A stretch of DNA of 64,000 bases from Zygnema circumcarinatum SAG 698-1b (GCA_037447605.1 CM074806.1:744001-808000), one strand, 5' to 3'; positions 33,755 through 50,099 are shown, numbered from the stretch's first letter. A program made the numbers and translations. The notes: a model not told the origin generated them from the sequence alone.

Positions 33755-34173
33755 AGTGCATGCGCTCCATTCTCCGTTGTGCGTTAAGAAATTTACATTT
33801 TGCATTCCGAAGGAAAACGCAGAATGAAATGCATTGTGCAGACTACAGAGTACAGAGGGCTCAAACGCGGGATGTGGACATGACACTTCATTGCCGAGTG
33901 GCGGCAGACCTTGTGCTCAATTGGTTGCGACGCGGCAACGGTGATACATCTTGCTCCCATGCTTTGCACGTCAGATAATTTAAAATCTCAAGAGATGGTA
34001 CTTTAAAGGATTTACCAGCGATGCCAAGAACGCAAATTATGATAAATAAACATCAGCGCTACTCGACTGACAGATAGCAGCTCGCATACTCAAATGGCCA
34101 TGCTTGCTTGTAACGTATTCCCTCCCTCCCCAGCCCTTGCCCCGTTCCACCGTCCACAGAGTTGGTTGATTTC

Positions 34174-37100
34174 TCAGTAGTAGCGCATCCAGCCCGGCAG
34201 GCCCCGCGGGACGATTTCCGGCACGTCTTCGGCGAGGCGCTTCCAGAGGTAGAGGCGGGGCAGGCCCTGGTAGAGGAGGCGGCCCAGCGTCTGCGCGTGG
34301 AAGGGCATGGCCCACCGCAGGCACCGCAGGAACCGCACGCGCTGCGGATGCCGCTCGAGGCTCACCATGATGAACGGCAGCAGCTGCACACAGGCACAGG
34401 CACGGGCTGGGATGAGAGCATGCCATACTATGCATGGCAAACAAGCGCCTGCTTTGGGTGGAACGAGAGAGCGCATGGCTTTCCGGATTCAAGCAGTAGA
34501 ATAGGGAAATGAAGAGTAAGGCCAGTCTGTATGGTGGAAGTAGGATGATGTCCAGTGTCCAGTGTGGGTCCTGGTTGTTGGCAGGATAAGCGGATGGGGT
34601 GTTTACTCCATCCTCAAACTTGTGCAGGTTGCAGTGTGCCAGACAAATTTTATGGAGCTCGGAATGCTTGTCAGTAGCTGCATGTAGCCGTATGACGAGA
34701 AACGCCCCCCAATCACTTTTCACCAGAAAAGAGCTTGAACGAGTAACTTGCATCATCATAATTCTCCCCGGTTGTTGGAATAGCAGATTCCCAACAGGAG
34801 ACAACGGCTTACCTCTGCCCATAACGCCATTGGTGTGGTCTCCCAAATGCGTCGCGTCGACTCTTTATGGATTCGAATGGGGATAAACTTTCTGCCAATG
34901 TGGTTCAAGTGATCCTCCTCCCTCCGTAGATGCCCTCTCAGATCATCCACAAAGGCCGTAACAGCCGCCTGCAATGGCACTCTTCACACCCGTGTATCAA
35001 TAAGAAACCCATATTCCAGTTCACCTCCATGTCCAACATAATCACTGCTATATCAGCTGCAATGTAAAAATCTCTGGGATTTCTTCTTCCAAAGCAAAGT
35101 GCAGCCTTGGACAAGATACACAATGCCTAATTCCTCTTTAATCCCACAGTTCGGCACAAACCTGCACAGATGCAGCAGCTGCAGCCTTCTGCTCACCCCC
35201 TTTAGCACTCGTGAAAGCTTGAATGGATGAAGTCACTGCAGTTGCCACCTCGTCACCGTGCATGTGCTCTTCGTGTGCGAACGCCGTAGCGCCCGGGAAG
35301 TAACTGTCAAAGAGCGGATACTGCGCAGCTTCTTCATGCTTTGAATGCTCTCCAAGTAACAGCATGATCTTGCTGAATTGCGTCTCAACCGCCCTGGAGA
35401 GAAGGGGAAAACCACCAAGGTATGGTGTAAGGCCGCAAGATGACGTCCAATTAATGAAAAAGAATCAGCATGAACAAACGTATGAGCCGTTAGACCAGCC
35501 ACTGACGACCGCTATCACTTGCAGTTGTGATGTTCAATGGAAGATTGAATCAGAATCCTCGAAGCAAGCCCCATATTAGGAGCAAAGATTGAAACCATTG
35601 CGTACAGACCCATTGCAGTTTAAGGACAGAAAATAACCGTCAATATTATTTGGGAGACTAAGGTAGGTGAGTGTTCATTTGGGCAGGCTAAAGAAGAAAC
35701 GAAGTGACATACAAATAGAACAACTCAGACAGGACGGGGATTATACAGCAACTGGTAAATCGACTGAGCAAGAAGAAATTTACAAAAGGCGAGAACACTT
35801 GCCTTAAATTAGGTCCACTTGGGGCTTCCACAAGGTTTTGGCACTGCTTTTGCAGCTTACCCATTGCTCCTCGAAGGGCCTCGTGGATAAGCTGAAAGAC
35901 ACGCACATGAAACGGCAAACAGTGGCATTGATACACTTAAAAGTTGTGATGGGAAGCCTTTGGTTTAAATGCTTTCTCCACAGGAATGCTCCCACTGATG
36001 CATTAACCTCACCTTCACGAATGTTATGGGGCCCCATTTGTCTTCCGGCACAAACACTTTGTAATTGACGAGCAAGCTTAGAGTCTGCATGGTCGCGATG
36101 AAGGCTGCCCAATTTACTGCGACCATTGCTGCATACATCAGAGCCTGGAGGCAAACACAGAAGGGACTCCGGTTAGCGCTGCTGATAACCTTCCATGTGC
36201 AGGGGCATTAAGCTGCAATCTTTCCGGCTGCCTAGGCAACTGAGCTATGGGTAGGATCCCATCATGCAGGAGGAAAGCGTGCAATTAAATGGCAGTCTGC
36301 TGTTCTCACCTTCGTCGAGCTGCTGTTGATGAACTGATGGTAGAATTGGGAGATGAAGGCGACAGTGGCAAGAGGGAATACGTAACCCCATGAATACATA
36401 TCAAACCGAGTCTGGACATTGCAAGAGGACATGACATGTTAACAGACATTGAAGAAACCAGTGTCCCACAAGGAAGGAAAGTGAAGGATTTCGCAAGCAA
36501 GAGATTCAACAGAGGGCCGACTTCAGTTGTCCTGACGGAGGACAAATCTTGCAGCTAATTTTCTGATGCATTGAAGAGCCGATTGATTCTTTGTTCAAGT
36601 TGTGCCTCCCGCAAGGAGCCCAACCAGAAAACATGAGTTCTCTGATATTGAGATAAGGGAATGCGACTCATACTGCCCAGAAGTAGCTCTGCAGGCCGAG
36701 CGAGAGCATCACAAGAACGAAGCCCCATGTGCAGTAGAAGCAGAAGCGGCTGAAGTTATCAAATCCCGCAAATGCAAGTGTGCTGCCGTCGGGTGAAACA
36801 GATGCTTGAGTGAGGGCCATCCAGCTCAAGCCCGCCATGGCAGGGGCTGCCACGTAAAGGAATATTGCAGAGCGGAGCTTGTCTTGGGGCTTCTCCTCTG
36901 CAGGGGATAACGCAGAGAAAGTACTTCATATCTCGAGATCATACAAGATCATACTCAAAAACATCCCACACGAAGTCAATAGACAGAAGTCGTAACAATG
37001 TTTCTTATCTACTTTAGCAGATACTCGATGACCCTTGAGCCATTTTGAACCCTTACGACTCGATAATGTCGTCGATCTTATGTCAATAGATTGCCCTTAC

Positions 37101-40100
37101 CAGTAACGATGCGGAGAATGTCAATGGCTGCGAGAACAGGCCACATGAACAAAGCTGACGAGAACCAAAGCCAACCCACTTCCTGATACTGAAGGAAATT
37201 GGAGGTGGGTCCGTGAACCCATGGGGCTACAAAGGCGGCGACGAAGTTTCCCAGTAAAGGCATCATCCAGCCACTGTTGACGAACTCGATATAGAGAGGA
37301 TTCTTCACCAGGTAGGAGGTCATAAGGACTGCTTGCAACATCTGAACCGGTGCAGCAATCCACTGCAGTCAAAGAAAGGGCAAGGGTCAGCAAGGGAGCA
37401 ACCCTCTGCTTGAAAGTTTATCTTCTATCTTGTTCAGTTTCAGAAAAGCAGACTGCTAACGAAATAGTATGTCCTGGAGACCTTGAGTAAACGGAATTTA
37501 CTACACAACGACGTATGCCAGACTTGCATCTGTGCAACATGGGAGATGAATTTCTAATTGTTTCGATTGCAGCAGACATGTGTTGAATCAGCAAGAACTC
37601 ACAAATAGGACTTGGCAAAGTCGCCACTTGTCGTCACGTGCAGCAATGTATGCAAAGAGCAAGATGGTAACAGGAATTGTGGAAAAGAAGCTGCGTTTTC
37701 CTGTTCCCCCAAAAACATACAAACTTCGGAACACGGTCAAAACAAGTGTGCCGAATGACTTCCTCACTAAAAGAAAATCGTGGCGAGCGAATGCTAGTGG
37801 TTCGTAGGTGGCCAGCGAGGCTGCCCCTCAATCGCAAGCATGCATCACCTGGATGCTGCCACTCCTTTGCAACTTTTTTGGGATAAAGAGCGGTCCGAAC
37901 AATGTACAGGAGCAAGAATGCTCCGAATATGACTCCTGAAAAAATGGCAACTCCCTTCCAAAGGCCCGAAGGCGTGCCCAGTGCACTGTCTGCTTCTAAC
38001 CTGCTCCCTCCCCACAGAGGTAGACAAAAGGCTCTGAGTAGTGATTCATTTCGGGTAATGCTCGAGAGCTACTATCACTGCTGCTATTGTGAGTTCTGTC
38101 CATACTAACAGAACATGTTCATGTTCATGTTCTGTTCTGTACATAGTTCTGTTCATAGCAACCGCCGTTTGATTAGTTTTGAATAGTGCCACAACTCGGC
38201 AAAAACGCCTCATTAATTAATTGCATTGAACACAACATGTCGTGTTGTAACTATTCTGTATACCAGTTACATTGTATGGCGATTCTTGAAACTTTCTGCG
38301 ATTTGTCTAGAGGATAGAGCAGAATGTAGGATGAACTATTCGATACAAAAAGGTGACTATTGCAAGAGAGGTGGTCCGTCAGTTTGAGACCTTACCACAC
38401 AAGAGCGACACTTGCGAGTGACATTGGCATGGAAAAGTACGTGATCTGCATGTGCCTCACAACTGCGACGCAAAACAGCACACACCCATGCGGGCAGCAT
38501 CAGCTCGCCAGGTCTACAACCGTACAACGGTAGTTGATGAGGAAACCATTGCTTTTTCCTTCACTACAATTGACATCCAATTCCGTGCTCCTTTGAAAAT
38601 GGGGCTTAAATCACAGTCGGCACAGACAAAACCCAAACTCGAGCTCTGCTGACCGTGAAAGTCGTCTCGCGTATATTCGTCAGTTTTTATCTTGTAGTGA
38701 AGAGCGGCCGCTCGCCGCTCCTCTGGAACATTATTTGCGAATTCCACTTCCTGCAGGCACGGCCAAAGCTTCCCCCATAAGTAAGCCACCCCCGGGAGTG
38801 GGAAAAACAAGCTTGCTCTCTTTCATCCAATCATGCATCATTATACACCAACTGTCAGCAAGCCATGTCAAGCCATGCGTCAAATGACCCCCACGAGGTA
38901 TCCAAGGTACGAGTTTACCATGGGCTTCTCGAACTTTGGGTGTGTGTCCGCCCACTCGAGTAAAGTCTTCGCATCCTTAATGGCATCATGTGCTTCGTCC
39001 TTGACTTCGGGAGTGACCAAACCAAACTTAATGAAATATCCAAACATCCAACAGGCTACGCAAAAATCGAGAAATCCCTGCAACGCGGAAGCACCTGCAA
39101 GTGGGGGACAAGAAGGATGTGGTGAATGGGCGGGCTGCCCTGCAGCAGGAGGAGGACAATGATTCATCTCGTAGGTATGCTGTGGTATACGAGTCAGTGC
39201 GACTTGCAGAAATTGCAGCAACGACTTTAGAAGAAACATGACGAAACAAAAAAAACTGAGCACACAGAAATGCAGAGCATCACACTATTCTGGTTTCAGT
39301 TCTGTCGGAGGGGTTGCAGCAAGCATACCGAAAAGCATTGCCAATACTACTGCACCCGCAATGTTTGATTCCAAGAAGAAAAGAATCATTGCCAAAGCCG
39401 AAAAGATAACCCCGCAGAATTGGGCGAACTGCATGCATCAAGCCACCATCGGATTAGACGCAATACTATCACCATGAAACAGATTCCTGGCAGAAATCAC
39501 CGGGTCAATTGCGACAAAGAAACTGAAAGCCTGACAGATGTCCTAATGGCGACCTTGCAGACCCTTCTCCTACGCCACGTGGTGTCCAACTTAAGCTTTT
39601 CAGGTTCAGCAAAACGTGAAAATACTTTTCACCTGCAGTGGCGCTCCATCACTTAGCTTCCGGGGGATGAAGTTTCCAGCGAGTATAGACATAGATCCAA
39701 AAATGGACATGCTGCCACCGAAGCAAAAGCTGCAGTCACAAACAGCAAACACATGAGGAGCAGCTTGTGCGTTTGCTGATTGCAAGGGTACACTGTGCCT
39801 TACTGCCCATCACCACCTGCTTTGTACCATATGTGCTCCATAACGCCCTGAGAAGCTCACAAGAGAGGTCAACAAGAAGGCCTACCGCGCAACAAAGTCA
39901 CCCGCCATGCCTGCGATAATCCAATGCATAGAGCGATGGTTTCTGAAGATGATGCCGAAAACGCACAAGATGGAGACTGCACACGCACGACTTGACCAGC
40001 TTAGCGCTTATTTCACCACAAAAAAATAAAAACGTCCACACGCCGCAGAGTGCATTCGTAAACCTGTGAGCATCCTCCGCCGATGACGCGTCAATTCAGC

Positions 40101-41047
40101 CTATCTCACGGAGAGAGTCCAAACAGAATAATGGAAGAACTGCAAATTGCAGCAACTCACTTTAGTGATGCGGCACTAGCAACAGTGCCTGAACCACAAC
40201 TTGGCACGAAAGTCCAGCCAAATGGAGCTATGGATGCACGAAAACGGCTTGACTTTGATCTCATTGAAACAGAATAACATGTGGAGTACGAACAGCTATC
40301 ATCACTGAAAAGTCGAATGCAGACGCAACGGACAATACAAAAGCTACGCCATAAAGGAAAAGAAACAGACCGTGCACGAGTGTGTTCCAATGTAAAAAAA
40401 AAAAATTATATATATATGACGAAATGGATGGAAATTGCTGTAAGAAACCAAACAATTTTAGCCTGCCGATGAAATTATGCAATTTATAAGGAAAAAAGAA
40501 ACGGGAAATGAGACCAAAAAACGAGGCTGAAGCAGGGTTGAAGCTCGTCACGCTCTTCAAATGTATACATATGGAAGACCCGCTCACCAAGAACAGCTCC
40601 GACGCGGTTCTGGTTCTTATCTGCCACTATTGGAAACCAGAGAACCGGGAAAATGGAGCCAATCTTCATTCCACGCGAGGGCGGATAAGCGATGTACTTT
40701 TCCTGGTCGCCATAGAGGCCTGGCGCCGCATTCGCAACCTTTGCCGAAGTCTTCCCTCCTGCGTTGGACCGCACATCAAGCAAGCAAGCAGGGCGCATCA
40801 CCATAAGCTTTCCACAGGAAGACCTCCCTCCTTGCTGCCAGCAAAAATACCTTCCAATAGCAGCGAGCGAATATTCCTGCAAGGCCACTGCCAAGATGAC
40901 CACGGCCACCATCCCATGCAACCAAACTCTTCCAACCAGCCCTCCCTCCCTCTGCTCACTCTCTCCAATCGCGGCACTACCTTTCCCCATCTCTACGTCT
41001 CCTTCTCCCGCAGGCGCCCCCCCCTCCATGAAGCCTCCCTCCGCCAT
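34174..41047 (-). CDS. Three-domain membrane protein (about 840 aa, 18 exons): DUF4395-like module, TDT/SLAC1/TehA channel domain, hemerythrin-like (HHE) domain
   Basis: All splice phases close. Exons 41047-40981, 40758-40588, 39976-39886, 39729-39633, 39428-39329 and 39094-38919 give FPIVADKNQNRVGA...GAPLQ|FAQFCGVIFS...ALQGFLDFCVACWMFGYFIKFG (DUF4395-like). Exons from 38462 to about 36010 give HMQITYFSMPMSLA, YPKKVAKEWQHP, SFFSTIP, WMMPLLGNFVAA, FLYVAAPAMAGLSW and FDMYSWGYVFPL (TehA/SLAC1). Exons from about 35890 to 34174 give LIHEALR...EHSKHEE...EEH...GHLRREE (hemerythrin-like). Confidence 0.88.
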
Positions 41048-41448
41048 GGCCTGCAGGCTGCAGCGCCCTCCTGCACCCAAAGCTCAAAGCAGCGACCAAC
41101 AAATGGGCAGCTGGAGGCTCCACCCTTCCAACTCGCGGGCGGTAGGCCGGCGTGGCCACAATACGTCGCCAAGTAAGCATCCCGTTTGAAATGGAGGTTT
41201 GTTATTGGAACACGTCATTCAATCCATGCTGACTAGGCTCCAGCTCGACCGCCTGCGCGACTCTCCGCGAAGCTGCGAGCTGACGCGCGGGTCACGACAA
41301 AAGCCAGCCTTCCGGGGACCAGTCACGAAGGCTAAACGACAAGCCGTACGTCGACCCAGCGCCGGCCAGAACTGGCCAGCTAGAAACACGACAAACCTCC
41401 CCGCCCCGGCGTCCCCGCCTCCGGCCGCCCGAGCCTCGAGAGGCGACA

Positions 41449-41460: not shown

Positions 41461-41742
41461 AATGATTACTGTTCGCGCGCACCCAGGGAGTGTTCGTACA
41501 GCACGGCGGGCGGGGACATTTAACTCCGCACATGCGGCCTCGGCCGCGGGGGGACTTCTTAACGACAAGCGGGCAGTCTTGTTTTGTCGTTTTCCGTGGT
41601 ATTCGCGGGTGCGGTCTCGAACGCGGTTGGGCGACACGACCGGCGAACTTTTGACCGTGCATTCATTGACTTTGGACTTCTTGACTCATAGACTCTGTGT
41701 GAGTCACAGCTGAGGTTGAAGTCCTCTCTCTCCCTCTCTCAC

Positions 41743-41952
41743 AGGAGGGAGGGAAGGGAGGGGAGAGGGAGGGGAGGGGAGGGGGAGGGGAAGGGGAAGG
41801 GGAGAGGGAGGGGAGGGGAGGGGAGGGGGAGGGGGAGGGGGAGGGGAAGGGGAGGGAGGGAGGGAAGGGAGGGGAGAGGGAGGGAGGGAGGGAGGGAGGG
41901 AGGGAGGGAGGGAGGGAGGGAGGGAGGGAGTGGGAGGGAGGGAGGGAGGGAA
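41743..41952. repeat. (GGGA)n / G-rich polypurine tract upstream of the channel gene
   Basis: Direct inspection. Confidence 0.9.
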
Positions 41953-42972
41953 GGACAACCCCCAGAAAGACACGGAGCCGCCAACACTGGTCCATCCAAG
42001 CACGAGGTAGCACAGCTACAACCTGTCACTTTCATCAGTCGAATGTGTACTGAAAAGAAAAGAAATGCGCAGTGTCGTGTCACAGTATACGGACAGTGCA
42101 CGTGGGCAATACTCCCCACGGCGACCTCTTAGTGTTTGTACGTCTCCACCCCACCCACACATTGTTGTCAGTGGCGTCTACGGCAAAAAAAGTGGGTCTG
42201 ACGAGACACAGGGAACATGCCGACATGATATTCCAAGTCAGCGGGGGCAAATTGTCAACGAAAGACTCTCGCATGGTGATGAAAATATGGAAATCAAACA
42301 CTAGCCATTCTCCCTAAGCCTCCTAAACGTCACCCATCTCGGTAGTGAAATTTTTAGTTCCATGGAACGACACCAAACATGAGGTGATAGGAGAAAGAAA
42401 AAAAAATACATAAATAGGGAGAAACATCCAACAGAGCAACTGCGTTAATACCACTATCACCTTTCTGCTCTATGCACTTTAAAAAAATTACCTCTAACCA
42501 TTGCATAGAGTAATACCTTTAGATGTAGACGGAATAAGCCAATTCAAAGACGCTACTTCTTCCTTACCCTCTGCTTTTTATTCGGACGGCGCTTCCACAA
42601 CTTTCTACTTGTAAGTATGATATGGGTTCCTCCATTCCTCCGTTTTGCTGGGAGAGCAGCAAACCTGGAGGAGCCCCACACAAAAAAAGTATCGTATTGG
42701 CCTACTATGAACATCTACTTGCTGCTCACTACCTCTACGTCTCCCTCTCCTTCTCTGCTTCCCTCTTCCAGAGTCTCCCTCTGCCCCTCTCCCTCTCCCT
42801 TCCCCCTTCCCTCTCCCTCCCCGTCTCCCTCGCTTCACCAGATTTTGATGACTACCCTGAATCCCGATAGTTATAAGCAACCCAAACCCTAAATAAATAA
42901 ATAAAAAAACCAGTTTCATCCCTGCACTACCCACCCGTCTAATTATACGGTGAAAAATCCATTTATTTTCGA

Positions 42973-50099
<7,127 letters not shown>

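Follow-up and report, generated by a model that had tools for sequence, protein, structure and literature searches.

DUF4395, a SLAC1/TehA-type channel domain and a hemerythrin domain in one polypeptide of Zygnema circumcarinatum: a candidate iron/O2- and redox-sensing anion channel

SLAC1-family anion channels are known as proteins that are controlled from outside by kinases via their disordered tails. In plant SLAC1, membrane-near segments of the N- and C-terminus act as an inhibitory plug until phosphorylation releases it, and F450-P451 of the Arabidopsis protein (AtSLAC1) represent the central-gate residue and the helix breaker of the ninth transmembrane helix (TM9), with F450 corresponding to F262 of Haemophilus influenzae TehA (HiTehA) (PMC10645844). 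Eukaryotic sensor-type hemerythrin domains are found in two iron/oxygen-sensing ubiquitin-ligase systems, namely FBXL5, an F-box adaptor that carries the domain at its N-terminus and controls its own degradation, and BRUTUS/HRZ, represented in the plant lineage by the iron sensor BRUTUS with three such domains placed ahead of CHY/RING zinc fingers. Here, we describe a gene of Zygnema circumcarinatum SAG 698-1b whose product joins both kinds of module behind a DUF4395 membrane domain. It lies on the minus strand at 41047-34174 of a 64,000-nucleotide stretch (GCA_037447605.1 CM074806.1:744001-808000), which is called the window throughout and from whose first letter all positions are counted. 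The presence of all three domains in one polypeptide is near certain. Based on our analysis, the protein is probably a SLAC1-type pore with a built-in iron/O2 hemerythrin sensor and a membrane dithiol sensor, a reading to which we assign a probability of roughly 0.55.

The locus is one transcribed gene of 17 exons encoding a membrane protein of 914 residues. The coding sequence of 2745 nt (914 codons and the stop) is frame-consistent and runs from an ATG at 41047 to a stop codon at 34176-34174 as a single open reading frame (ORF) across the introns, as judged by three-frame translation of the minus strand over 33800-41400. Introns are of the GT-AG type except for intron 14 (35394-35802), which has a GC donor and is spliced as GC-AG in all four RNA runs used for placement. 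An earlier note on this DNA had proposed one frame-consistent protein of 18 exons and about 840 residues; the single reading frame stands, while exon count and length are replaced by the values given above. All motifs it had named were found, i.e. CVAC at residues 261-264, WMMPLLGNF at 478, AAPA at 550 and SWGYVFP at 615. The exons are as follows.

Exon 1, 40588..41047, minus strand: poorly conserved N-terminus (residues 1-134) with a hydrophobic stretch at residues 37-64 by hydropathy, and start of DUF4395 (from about residue 135); reading frame open from 41083; donor 40588 joined to 39976 in all four RNA runs.
Exon 2, 39886..39976, minus strand: TM1-TM2 of DUF4395; RNA joints 39976/40588 and 39729/39886, and alignment.
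Exon 3, 39633..39729, minus strand: DUF4395 loop; RNA joints.
Exon 4, 39329..39428, minus strand: TM3 of DUF4395 with C221 (39416-39414) in the PKQFAxxCG motif, here PLQFAQFCG; Pfam DUF4395 profile positions 75-106, E 0.0025, 18.6 bits.
Exon 5, 38919..39094, minus strand: end of TM4 of DUF4395, CVAC (C261 at 39062-39060, C264 at 39053-39051) and start of the cytosolic linker; Pfam DUF4395 profile positions 110-129, 12.2 bits.
Exon 6, 38654..38750, minus strand: linker between DUF4395 and channel with a conserved K-x-K-T-D-E segment; RNA joint 38749/38918.
Exon 7, 38396..38462, minus strand: SLAC1 TM1; RNA joint 37998/38394 and loose contig ends; alignment to SLAH1/SLAH3 via the relative P0009.
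Exon 8, 37849..38000, minus strand: SLAC1 TM2; Pfam SLAC1 profile positions 34-69, E 4e-5.
Exon 9, 37603..37700, minus strand: SLAC1 TM3; RNA joints.
Exon 10, 37101..37362, minus strand: SLAC1 TM4-TM6 with WMMPLLGNF; Pfam SLAC1 profile positions 108-197, E 3e-5.
Exon 11, 36674..36897, minus strand: SLAC1 TM7-TM8 with AAPA; Pfam SLAC1 profile positions 201-264.
Exon 12, 36310..36411, minus strand: SLAC1 TM9 with the predicted gate F620-P621 (36378-36373); Pfam SLAC1 profile positions 277-300.
Exon 13, 36013..36144, minus strand: SLAC1 TM10 and the KWGP linker motif, residues 678-681 (36039-36028).
Exon 14, 35803..35891, minus strand: hemerythrin helix 1 with H689 (35885-35883), followed by the GC donor; RNA joint 35392/35802 in four runs.
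Exon 15, 35162..35393, minus strand: hemerythrin helices 2-3 with H732xxxE736 (35347-35333) and H759 (35266-35264); invariant columns.
Exon 16, 34813..34968, minus strand: hemerythrin helix 4 with H806xxxE810 (34932-34918) and start of the RKxxP extension; RNA joint 34967/35161.
Exon 17, 34174..34383, minus strand: conserved C-terminal extension of the hemerythrin domain and stop codon.

RNA contigs from four runs were placed on 34650-40649, with the first 398 nt of exon 1 including the start codon (40650-41047) and the body of exon 17 lying outside. Fourteen of the 16 junctions (exons 1/2 to 5/6 and 7/8 to 15/16) are crossed by RNA joints exactly at the model borders, with CT..AC ends corresponding to GT..AG on the gene strand, and the joint between exons 14 and 15 is consistent with a GC-AG intron. 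The remaining two junctions are supported by loose contig ends that spell the adjacent exon: ends at 38654 and 38463 read into the neighbouring exons 6 and 7, and in four runs the first 30 nt of exon 17 appear, as reverse complement, just before 34813. Both fusion junctions are spliced in RNA: exons 5-6-7 connect DUF4395 with the channel, and exons 13-14 connect the channel with hemerythrin, the latter through the joints 36143/36309 and 35891/36013 around exon 13. The longest contigs span exon 1 to exon 12 (1637 nt) and exon 12 to exon 17 (712 nt); the length of the former indicates that exon 1 is unspliced to about 40803. All three domains are thus joined by overlapping short-read contigs, as expected from the single transcript that had been proposed. 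Sampled words of 34900-40800 were present at 39-46% in six RNA runs of the same organism, which is about the exonic share of this stretch.

The contigs are 95-99% identical to the window, so the expressed form is a diverged allele, strain or copy. Among 36 listed exonic differences 19 are synonymous, and the nonsynonymous ones cluster at residues 665-672 and 763-777; differences at H732 and H806 are silent, and ligand codons in the diverged expressed copy vary only synonymously. In RNA, exon 5 varies at both ends, with one variant having 30 different letters at 38919-38945 (3' end) and a four-letter difference at 39087-39090 (5' end) replacing Ser by Ala. Together with the exonic differences, these variants point to a second allele, strain or paralogue. 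In runs X2 and X3, the hemerythrin exons have about 5-fold the contig word depth of the DUF4395 exons, which could reflect shorter transcripts or a 3' bias. Contigs of low depth (word depth 3-16 compared with hundreds to thousands on exons) pass through introns at 35441-35831, 36382-36703, 38069-38423 and 39948-40617 and could represent pre-mRNA, retained introns or DNA carry-over.

Two further candidates in the 5' region were rejected. A 92-nt intron inside exon 1 (40850-40759) breaks the frame and reaches a stop codon, and a 67-nt open piece with good AG/GT flanks in intron 1 (40161-40227) is likewise incompatible with the frame and left out by the RNA joint 39976/40588. A 19-exon draft containing both the extra intron 40850-40759 and the extra exon 40227-40161 fails on frame.

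Judged by its sequence, the gene is a member of a conserved eukaryotic family that is not restricted to algae. Using exon 10 as a query against 1.84 billion protein representatives, we obtained nine matches, four of them long proteins carrying DUF4395 (PF14340), SLAC1 (PF03595) and hemerythrin (PF01814) in that order; an entry for the window's own protein was not found among these representatives. All three domains are present in P0004, P0012, P0009, P0008, P0010 and L003. Named members are Rigifila ramosa P0004 (EP00004_P014257) and the paralogues CAOG_07723 and CAOG_08260 of Capsaspora owczarzaki (P0009/P0012), and others are P0010, which lies on a eukaryote-type metagenome contig, L003 and L004. 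Capsaspora is a close unicellular relative of animals and Rigifila is a deep-branching protist. The SLAC1 profile scores 152 bits in P0009 and 147 bits in P0012, and DUF4395 scores of relatives range from 45 to 76 bits. The whole protein is encoded in single uninterrupted ORFs in L003 (984 residues), L002 (797 residues) and L001 (851 residues). In the ESM Atlas, 59 eukaryotic proteins, most often from Chlorophyta, form a cluster in which SLAC1 is present in 100%, DUF4395 in 90% and hemerythrin in 59% of cases. The uncharacterised homologues whose existence the earlier note had guessed are therefore found in Rigifila, Capsaspora, chlorophytes, a metagenome and UniProt entries. Word-index protein searches returned very few family members, and no land-plant member turned up, although no systematic land-plant search was carried out.

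Some family members carry an additional N-terminal domain. L003 begins with a complete glutaredoxin (PF00462, E 2e-10, CPFC) ahead of DUF4395. In L001 (9719-9952, 10001-12556), the gene call P0010 begins inside a glutaredoxin whose first half with CPYC is found in an upstream ORF past a short intron-like gap, so the true L001 protein would be arranged as glutaredoxin-DUF4395-SLAC1-hemerythrin. These N-terminal dithiol glutaredoxins explain the database names of the family: the ESM Atlas cluster is automatically named 'Glutaredoxin-C4 family protein' and full-length matches in the AlphaFold DB are called 'Glutaredoxin domain-containing protein' (A0A7S1LSH0, A0A2V0PFY0, A0A482SNB2). P0010 has been labelled a tellurite-resistance-like permease by JGI. 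A second isoform of the P0004 Trinity gene in Rigifila ramosa, P0003 (604 residues), starts with an unrelated sequence and is without DUF4395 and the initial helices of the channel, resulting from either alternative transcription or misassembly. Database entries call the members hypothetical, 'DUF4395 domain-containing', 'glutaredoxin domain-containing' or 'tellurite resistance-like' and nothing more specific. Literature searches returned no paper about the fusion, the function of DUF4395 or the Capsaspora genes, in line with the earlier note, to which no functional description was known. The gene is thus new as a member of an uncharacterised family, with an architecture for which we found no paper.

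Domains of the window protein were assigned by a Pfam scan of exon pieces followed by comparison with full-length relatives (blastp, MAFFT). On the pieces, exons 4 and 5 match DUF4395 and exons 8, 10, 11 and 12 match SLAC1, all collinear. The SLAC1 pieces score 14-24 bits relative to a cut-off of 27.9, and the scores fall under the gathering score because the pieces are fragments. The window protein matches relatives over nearly its full length from about residue 94, with E 1e-90 to 3e-140 and 27-36% identity; residues 94-914, for example, align with residues 8-832 of P0012 (E 9e-135), with similar coverage for P0009, P0004, P0010 and P0008. Every segment is recovered separately, namely DUF4395 (residues 135-292, E 2e-26 to 4e-19), the channel (E 2e-71 to 1e-29; residues 340-686 match P0009 with E 2e-71 and P0012 with E 3e-69), hemerythrin (residues 687-820, E 7e-15 to 4e-4) and the C-terminal tail (residues 821-914, E 2e-18 to 4e-13). 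The order is DUF4395 with four transmembrane helices, a linker of about 75 residues, a SLAC1/TehA domain of ten transmembrane helices, KWGP, and hemerythrin with its tail. The window's N-terminus is longer than, and unrelated to, those of its relatives. Collinear matching of full-length relatives thus bears out the proposed single polypeptide with DUF4395, a complete SLAC1/TDT channel and hemerythrin after the last transmembrane helix.

The residues expected to matter for function are conserved. In the family alignments, the cysteine of PKQFAxxCG (C221) and both cysteines of the CxxC (C261, C264) are invariant. The window protein has CVAC in place of CxGC. The TM9 phenylalanine column (F620, followed by P621, in YVFPL) is also invariant. 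Aligned via P0009, F620-P621 coincides with the FP of the 'tFPm' motif in SLAH1, SLAH3 and BdSLAC1 and thus takes the F450-P451 position of plant SLAC/SLAH proteins, in agreement with the gate phenylalanine named previously. Directly after TM10, KWGP (residues 678-681) is near-invariant, with KFGP in L004. The di-iron ligand set H689, H732xxxE736, H759 and H806xxxE810 is complete in the window protein and its columns are invariant in the family, as is much of the C-terminal tail of about 95 residues. Members from Capsaspora, Rigifila and UniProt share the collinear architecture, invariant cysteines, gate phenylalanine, KWGP/KFGP, ligand set and tail, and differ in that some of them add the N-terminal dithiol glutaredoxin that the window gene does not have.

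To compare the protein with the known systems, structure models of relatives were used. The P0012 model, built from the family alignment, has a mean pLDDT of 80 and a pTM of 0.65. Its channel part superposes with TMt 0.90 and a root-mean-square deviation of 2.5 on TehA (3m7c), with 0.87 on SLAC1 (7en0) and with 0.72-0.88 on SLAC1/SLAH cryo-EM structures, while DUF4395 forms four long helices with the CxxC between the fourth and a short next helix. By phmmer via P0009, the channel domain is closest to SLAH1 (E 2e-19), with plant SLAC1/SLAH proteins ranging from 2e-19 to 3e-12 and TehA at 4e-9. Land-plant SLAC1, SLAH1 and SLAH3 (PDB 7en0, 7wnq, 8j1e, 9m7r, 9m7s) thus share the Pfam family, the best channel sequence matches, the fold of ten transmembrane helices and the TM9 Phe-Pro with our protein. 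Whereas only disordered tails flank the channel in this phospho-gated subfamily, the window protein has a four-helix CxxC membrane module on the N-terminal side and a folded, predicted di-iron domain on the C-terminal side. H. influenzae TehA (PDB 3m71 and related) gives the best channel superposition and has the equivalent gate residue F262, but it is a bacterial stand-alone protein of ten transmembrane helices with a weaker sequence match and without sensor domains.

The hemerythrin region with its tail was modeled for L003 (2285-3004), yielding ten helices with a pLDDT of 91.6 and a pTM of 0.87. Over the whole length, it best matches the third hemerythrin domains of BTSL1, BRUTUS and BTSL2 from Arabidopsis (F4IDY5, F4HVS0 and Q8LPQ5 being the BRUTUS/BTSL entries; TM-score by query 0.71-0.75), and these matches cover 224-249 residues and therefore include the tail. 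Among solved structures, the FBXL5 hemerythrin domain (PDB 3v5x/3v5z/3u9j) is best (probability 1.0, TMt 0.70-0.75) and the H/HxxxE/H/HxxxE positions align; in the ESM Atlas, FBXL5 and an extended bacterial HHE protein were returned. FBXL5 is also the top match of a sequence profile of the region (E 6e-5), with the RIC proteins YtfE and ScdA behind it. Fold and profile, together with the intact set of four histidines and two glutamates, are in good agreement with the sensor-type hemerythrin that had been suggested. An assignment as classical oxygen-carrier hemerythrin was rejected, since by fold and by profile the region lies closest to the sensor domains of FBXL5 and BRUTUS and to extended HHE proteins of bacteria. 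The domain differs from that of FBXL5 in following the last helix of a channel and in carrying about 95 further conserved residues. BRUTUS/BTSL matches most of this extension, but at only 14-16% identity; BRUTUS has three such domains, and two predicted structures were compared with each other.

DUF4395 is also widespread in bacteria. We scanned one genome per bacterial and archaeal species, seeded only with DUF4395 motifs, and found stand-alone proteins only, mostly in Actinomycetota and Chloroflexota (41 genome loci). No DUF4395-SLAC1 or SLAC1-hemerythrin fusion was present in these 41 loci or in about 70 bacterial-type metagenome loci obtained by the same seeding. The bacterial proteins resemble the window's domain in being four-helix modules with PKQFA-x-x-CG and C-x-G-C (fold TM-score of 0.65-0.72 against the bacterial models) and differ by their length of about 150-200 residues and by the missing fusion to channel or hemerythrin. 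A search for the architecture in algae and bacteria, as suggested by the earlier note, thus yielded a eukaryotic family including chlorophytes on one side and only stand-alone DUF4395 in prokaryotes on the other. Apart from 17 high-GC loci without ORF calls, the bacterial genes have no conserved neighbours outside one close lineage, in which an amidohydrolase, DUF7064/7065, a polyketide-cyclase-like protein and a cupredoxin-like protein are shared; nothing in these neighbourhoods points to a pathway. In the ESM Atlas, other fusion partners of DUF4395 are an RGS domain (a cluster of 50 members in Cercozoa) and, in some Chloroflexota, thioredoxin, so that this membrane module is repeatedly placed N-terminal to signalling or redox domains.

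Taken together, we propose the following mode of action. The channel domain would pass small anions through a pore closed by the TM9 phenylalanine, as in SLAC1 and TehA, and folded domains that read chemistry would take the positions of the plant SLAC1 tails and plug. A first sensor would be the di-iron hemerythrin of the BRUTUS/FBXL5 type, fixed to TM10 where plant SLAC1 has its C-terminal plug; through it, iron loading or the chemistry of O2, nitric oxide (NO) or peroxide may act on gating or on the stability of the protein. The near-invariance of the KWGP joint speaks for a hemerythrin that is rigidly coupled to TM10. A second sensor would be the dithiol at the membrane face, which in relatives may be served by the fused glutaredoxin and couple glutathione redox state to the pore. 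C221 is near the beginning of TM3, and the CxxC is located where TM4 ends. The termini of SLAC1 are cytosolic, and with four transmembrane helices in DUF4395 the relatives' glutaredoxin, the three cysteines and the hemerythrin should all face the cytosol. The N-terminal glutaredoxin of some members strengthens the thiol-redox half of this idea. Direct gating of the pore is conceivable, although we consider it somewhat short of an even chance. The most specific version, in which the protein would be the first hemerythrin-gated ion channel, with an FBXL5/BRUTUS-type di-iron centre on the last SLAC1 helix, directly gated by iron, O2, NO or peroxide and assisted by a glutaredoxin-served dithiol, and ancient in view of its presence in green algae, Capsaspora and Rigifila, is offered tentatively and is less likely than not.

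Several observations weigh against the proposed sensor channel. Of the three Pfam families the earlier note had expected, all were recovered in relatives, while the window's exon pieces gave weak DUF4395 and SLAC1 matches and its four hemerythrin pieces had no PF01814 match. Even in several relatives, PF01814 comes only near the gathering score of 25.3 bits, within a range of 19-32 (L003 31.9, P0008 28.0, P0010 27.3, P0009 26.2, P0012 24.5, P0004 19.4). The window protein itself carries no glutaredoxin, and tblastn with the glutaredoxin region of L003 located none in the 64-kb window (best E 0.6, elsewhere); none was found in the Capsaspora or Rigifila members either. Just before the CxxC, the window has Q255 where all relatives have Glu. 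The N-terminal 134 residues and the start codon are predicted only, and the hydrophobic stretch at residues 37-64 could alter the topology. The structure models represent the relatives P0012 and L003 and not the window protein. Finally, the TDT family includes carriers such as the yeast sulfite pump Ssu1 and Mae1 besides channels, so the term 'channel' is itself not certain.

The strongest alternative is redox-coupled handling of oxyanions in place of sensing. Here, the protein would be an exporter of the TDT type, at whose cytosolic mouth a relay from glutaredoxin to the CxxC would act on a thiol-reactive, selenite-, tellurite-, sulfite- or arsenate-like oxyanion or on the adduct of this oxyanion with glutathione, with hemerythrin as an accessory, e.g. 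for peroxide protection or reporting. Membership of the tellurite-resistance protein TehA and of Ssu1 in the TDT family, Ssu1-named proteins among the AlphaFold DB fold matches, the JGI name of P0010, the dithiol glutaredoxin ahead of DUF4395 in L003, L001 and UniProt entries, and the bacterial thioredoxin-DUF4395 fusions are all in line with such a function. However, glutaredoxin is missing from the window gene, Capsaspora and Rigifila and is thus dispensable for the core, by sequence the channel is closer to SLAH/SLAC of plants (E 2e-19) than to TehA (E 4e-9), and bacterial DUF4395 genes have no conserved sulfur, selenium or arsenic neighbours. We regard oxyanion handling as rather unlikely.

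Less likely again is that hemerythrin serves as a stability switch instead of a gate, whereby iron or oxygen loading would set its folding and the channel would be degraded or kept, changing abundance and not open probability. FBXL5 and BRUTUS, the nearest relatives by structure and profile, are known to work in this way. Set against this precedent, the KWGP joint, near-invariant and directly behind TM10, and the long conserved tail point to a geometry that is fixed relative to the channel, and the protein is without a degron or ubiquitin-ligase element. That the fusion is an artefact of gene model or assembly, with two or three adjacent genes read as one, is very improbable: the climb in word depth in X2 and X3, the Rigifila isoform P0003 without DUF4395 and the short-read nature of the contigs, which cannot prove a full-length molecule, would fit it, but exons 5-6-7 as well as 13-14 are connected by splice joints in every run, contigs overlap across exons 1-12 and 12-17, the model contains no stop codon or frame break, and L003, L002 and L001 encode the whole protein without interruption.

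Upstream of the gene, exons of an AGC-type (phototropin-like) protein kinase are found on the minus strand at 43200-45300 of the window, and a CT-rich simple repeat lies at about 41700-42100 between the kinase exons and the channel gene.

In conclusion, a SLAC1-family protein with its own iron/O2 sensor and thiol module would, if our reading is correct, be gated differently from the kinase-controlled plant channels, with metal or redox chemistry that is built into the protein acting on an anion channel. For eukaryotic sensor-type hemerythrins, this would represent a third output besides the ubiquitin-ligase systems of FBXL5 and BRUTUS/HRZ. For DUF4395, it would provide the first functional context, that of a cytosol-facing dithiol working with glutaredoxin or thioredoxin. 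Gating of anion flux by iron, O2 or thiol redox state is plausible and can be tested, as intron-free relatives exist in Capsaspora and L003.

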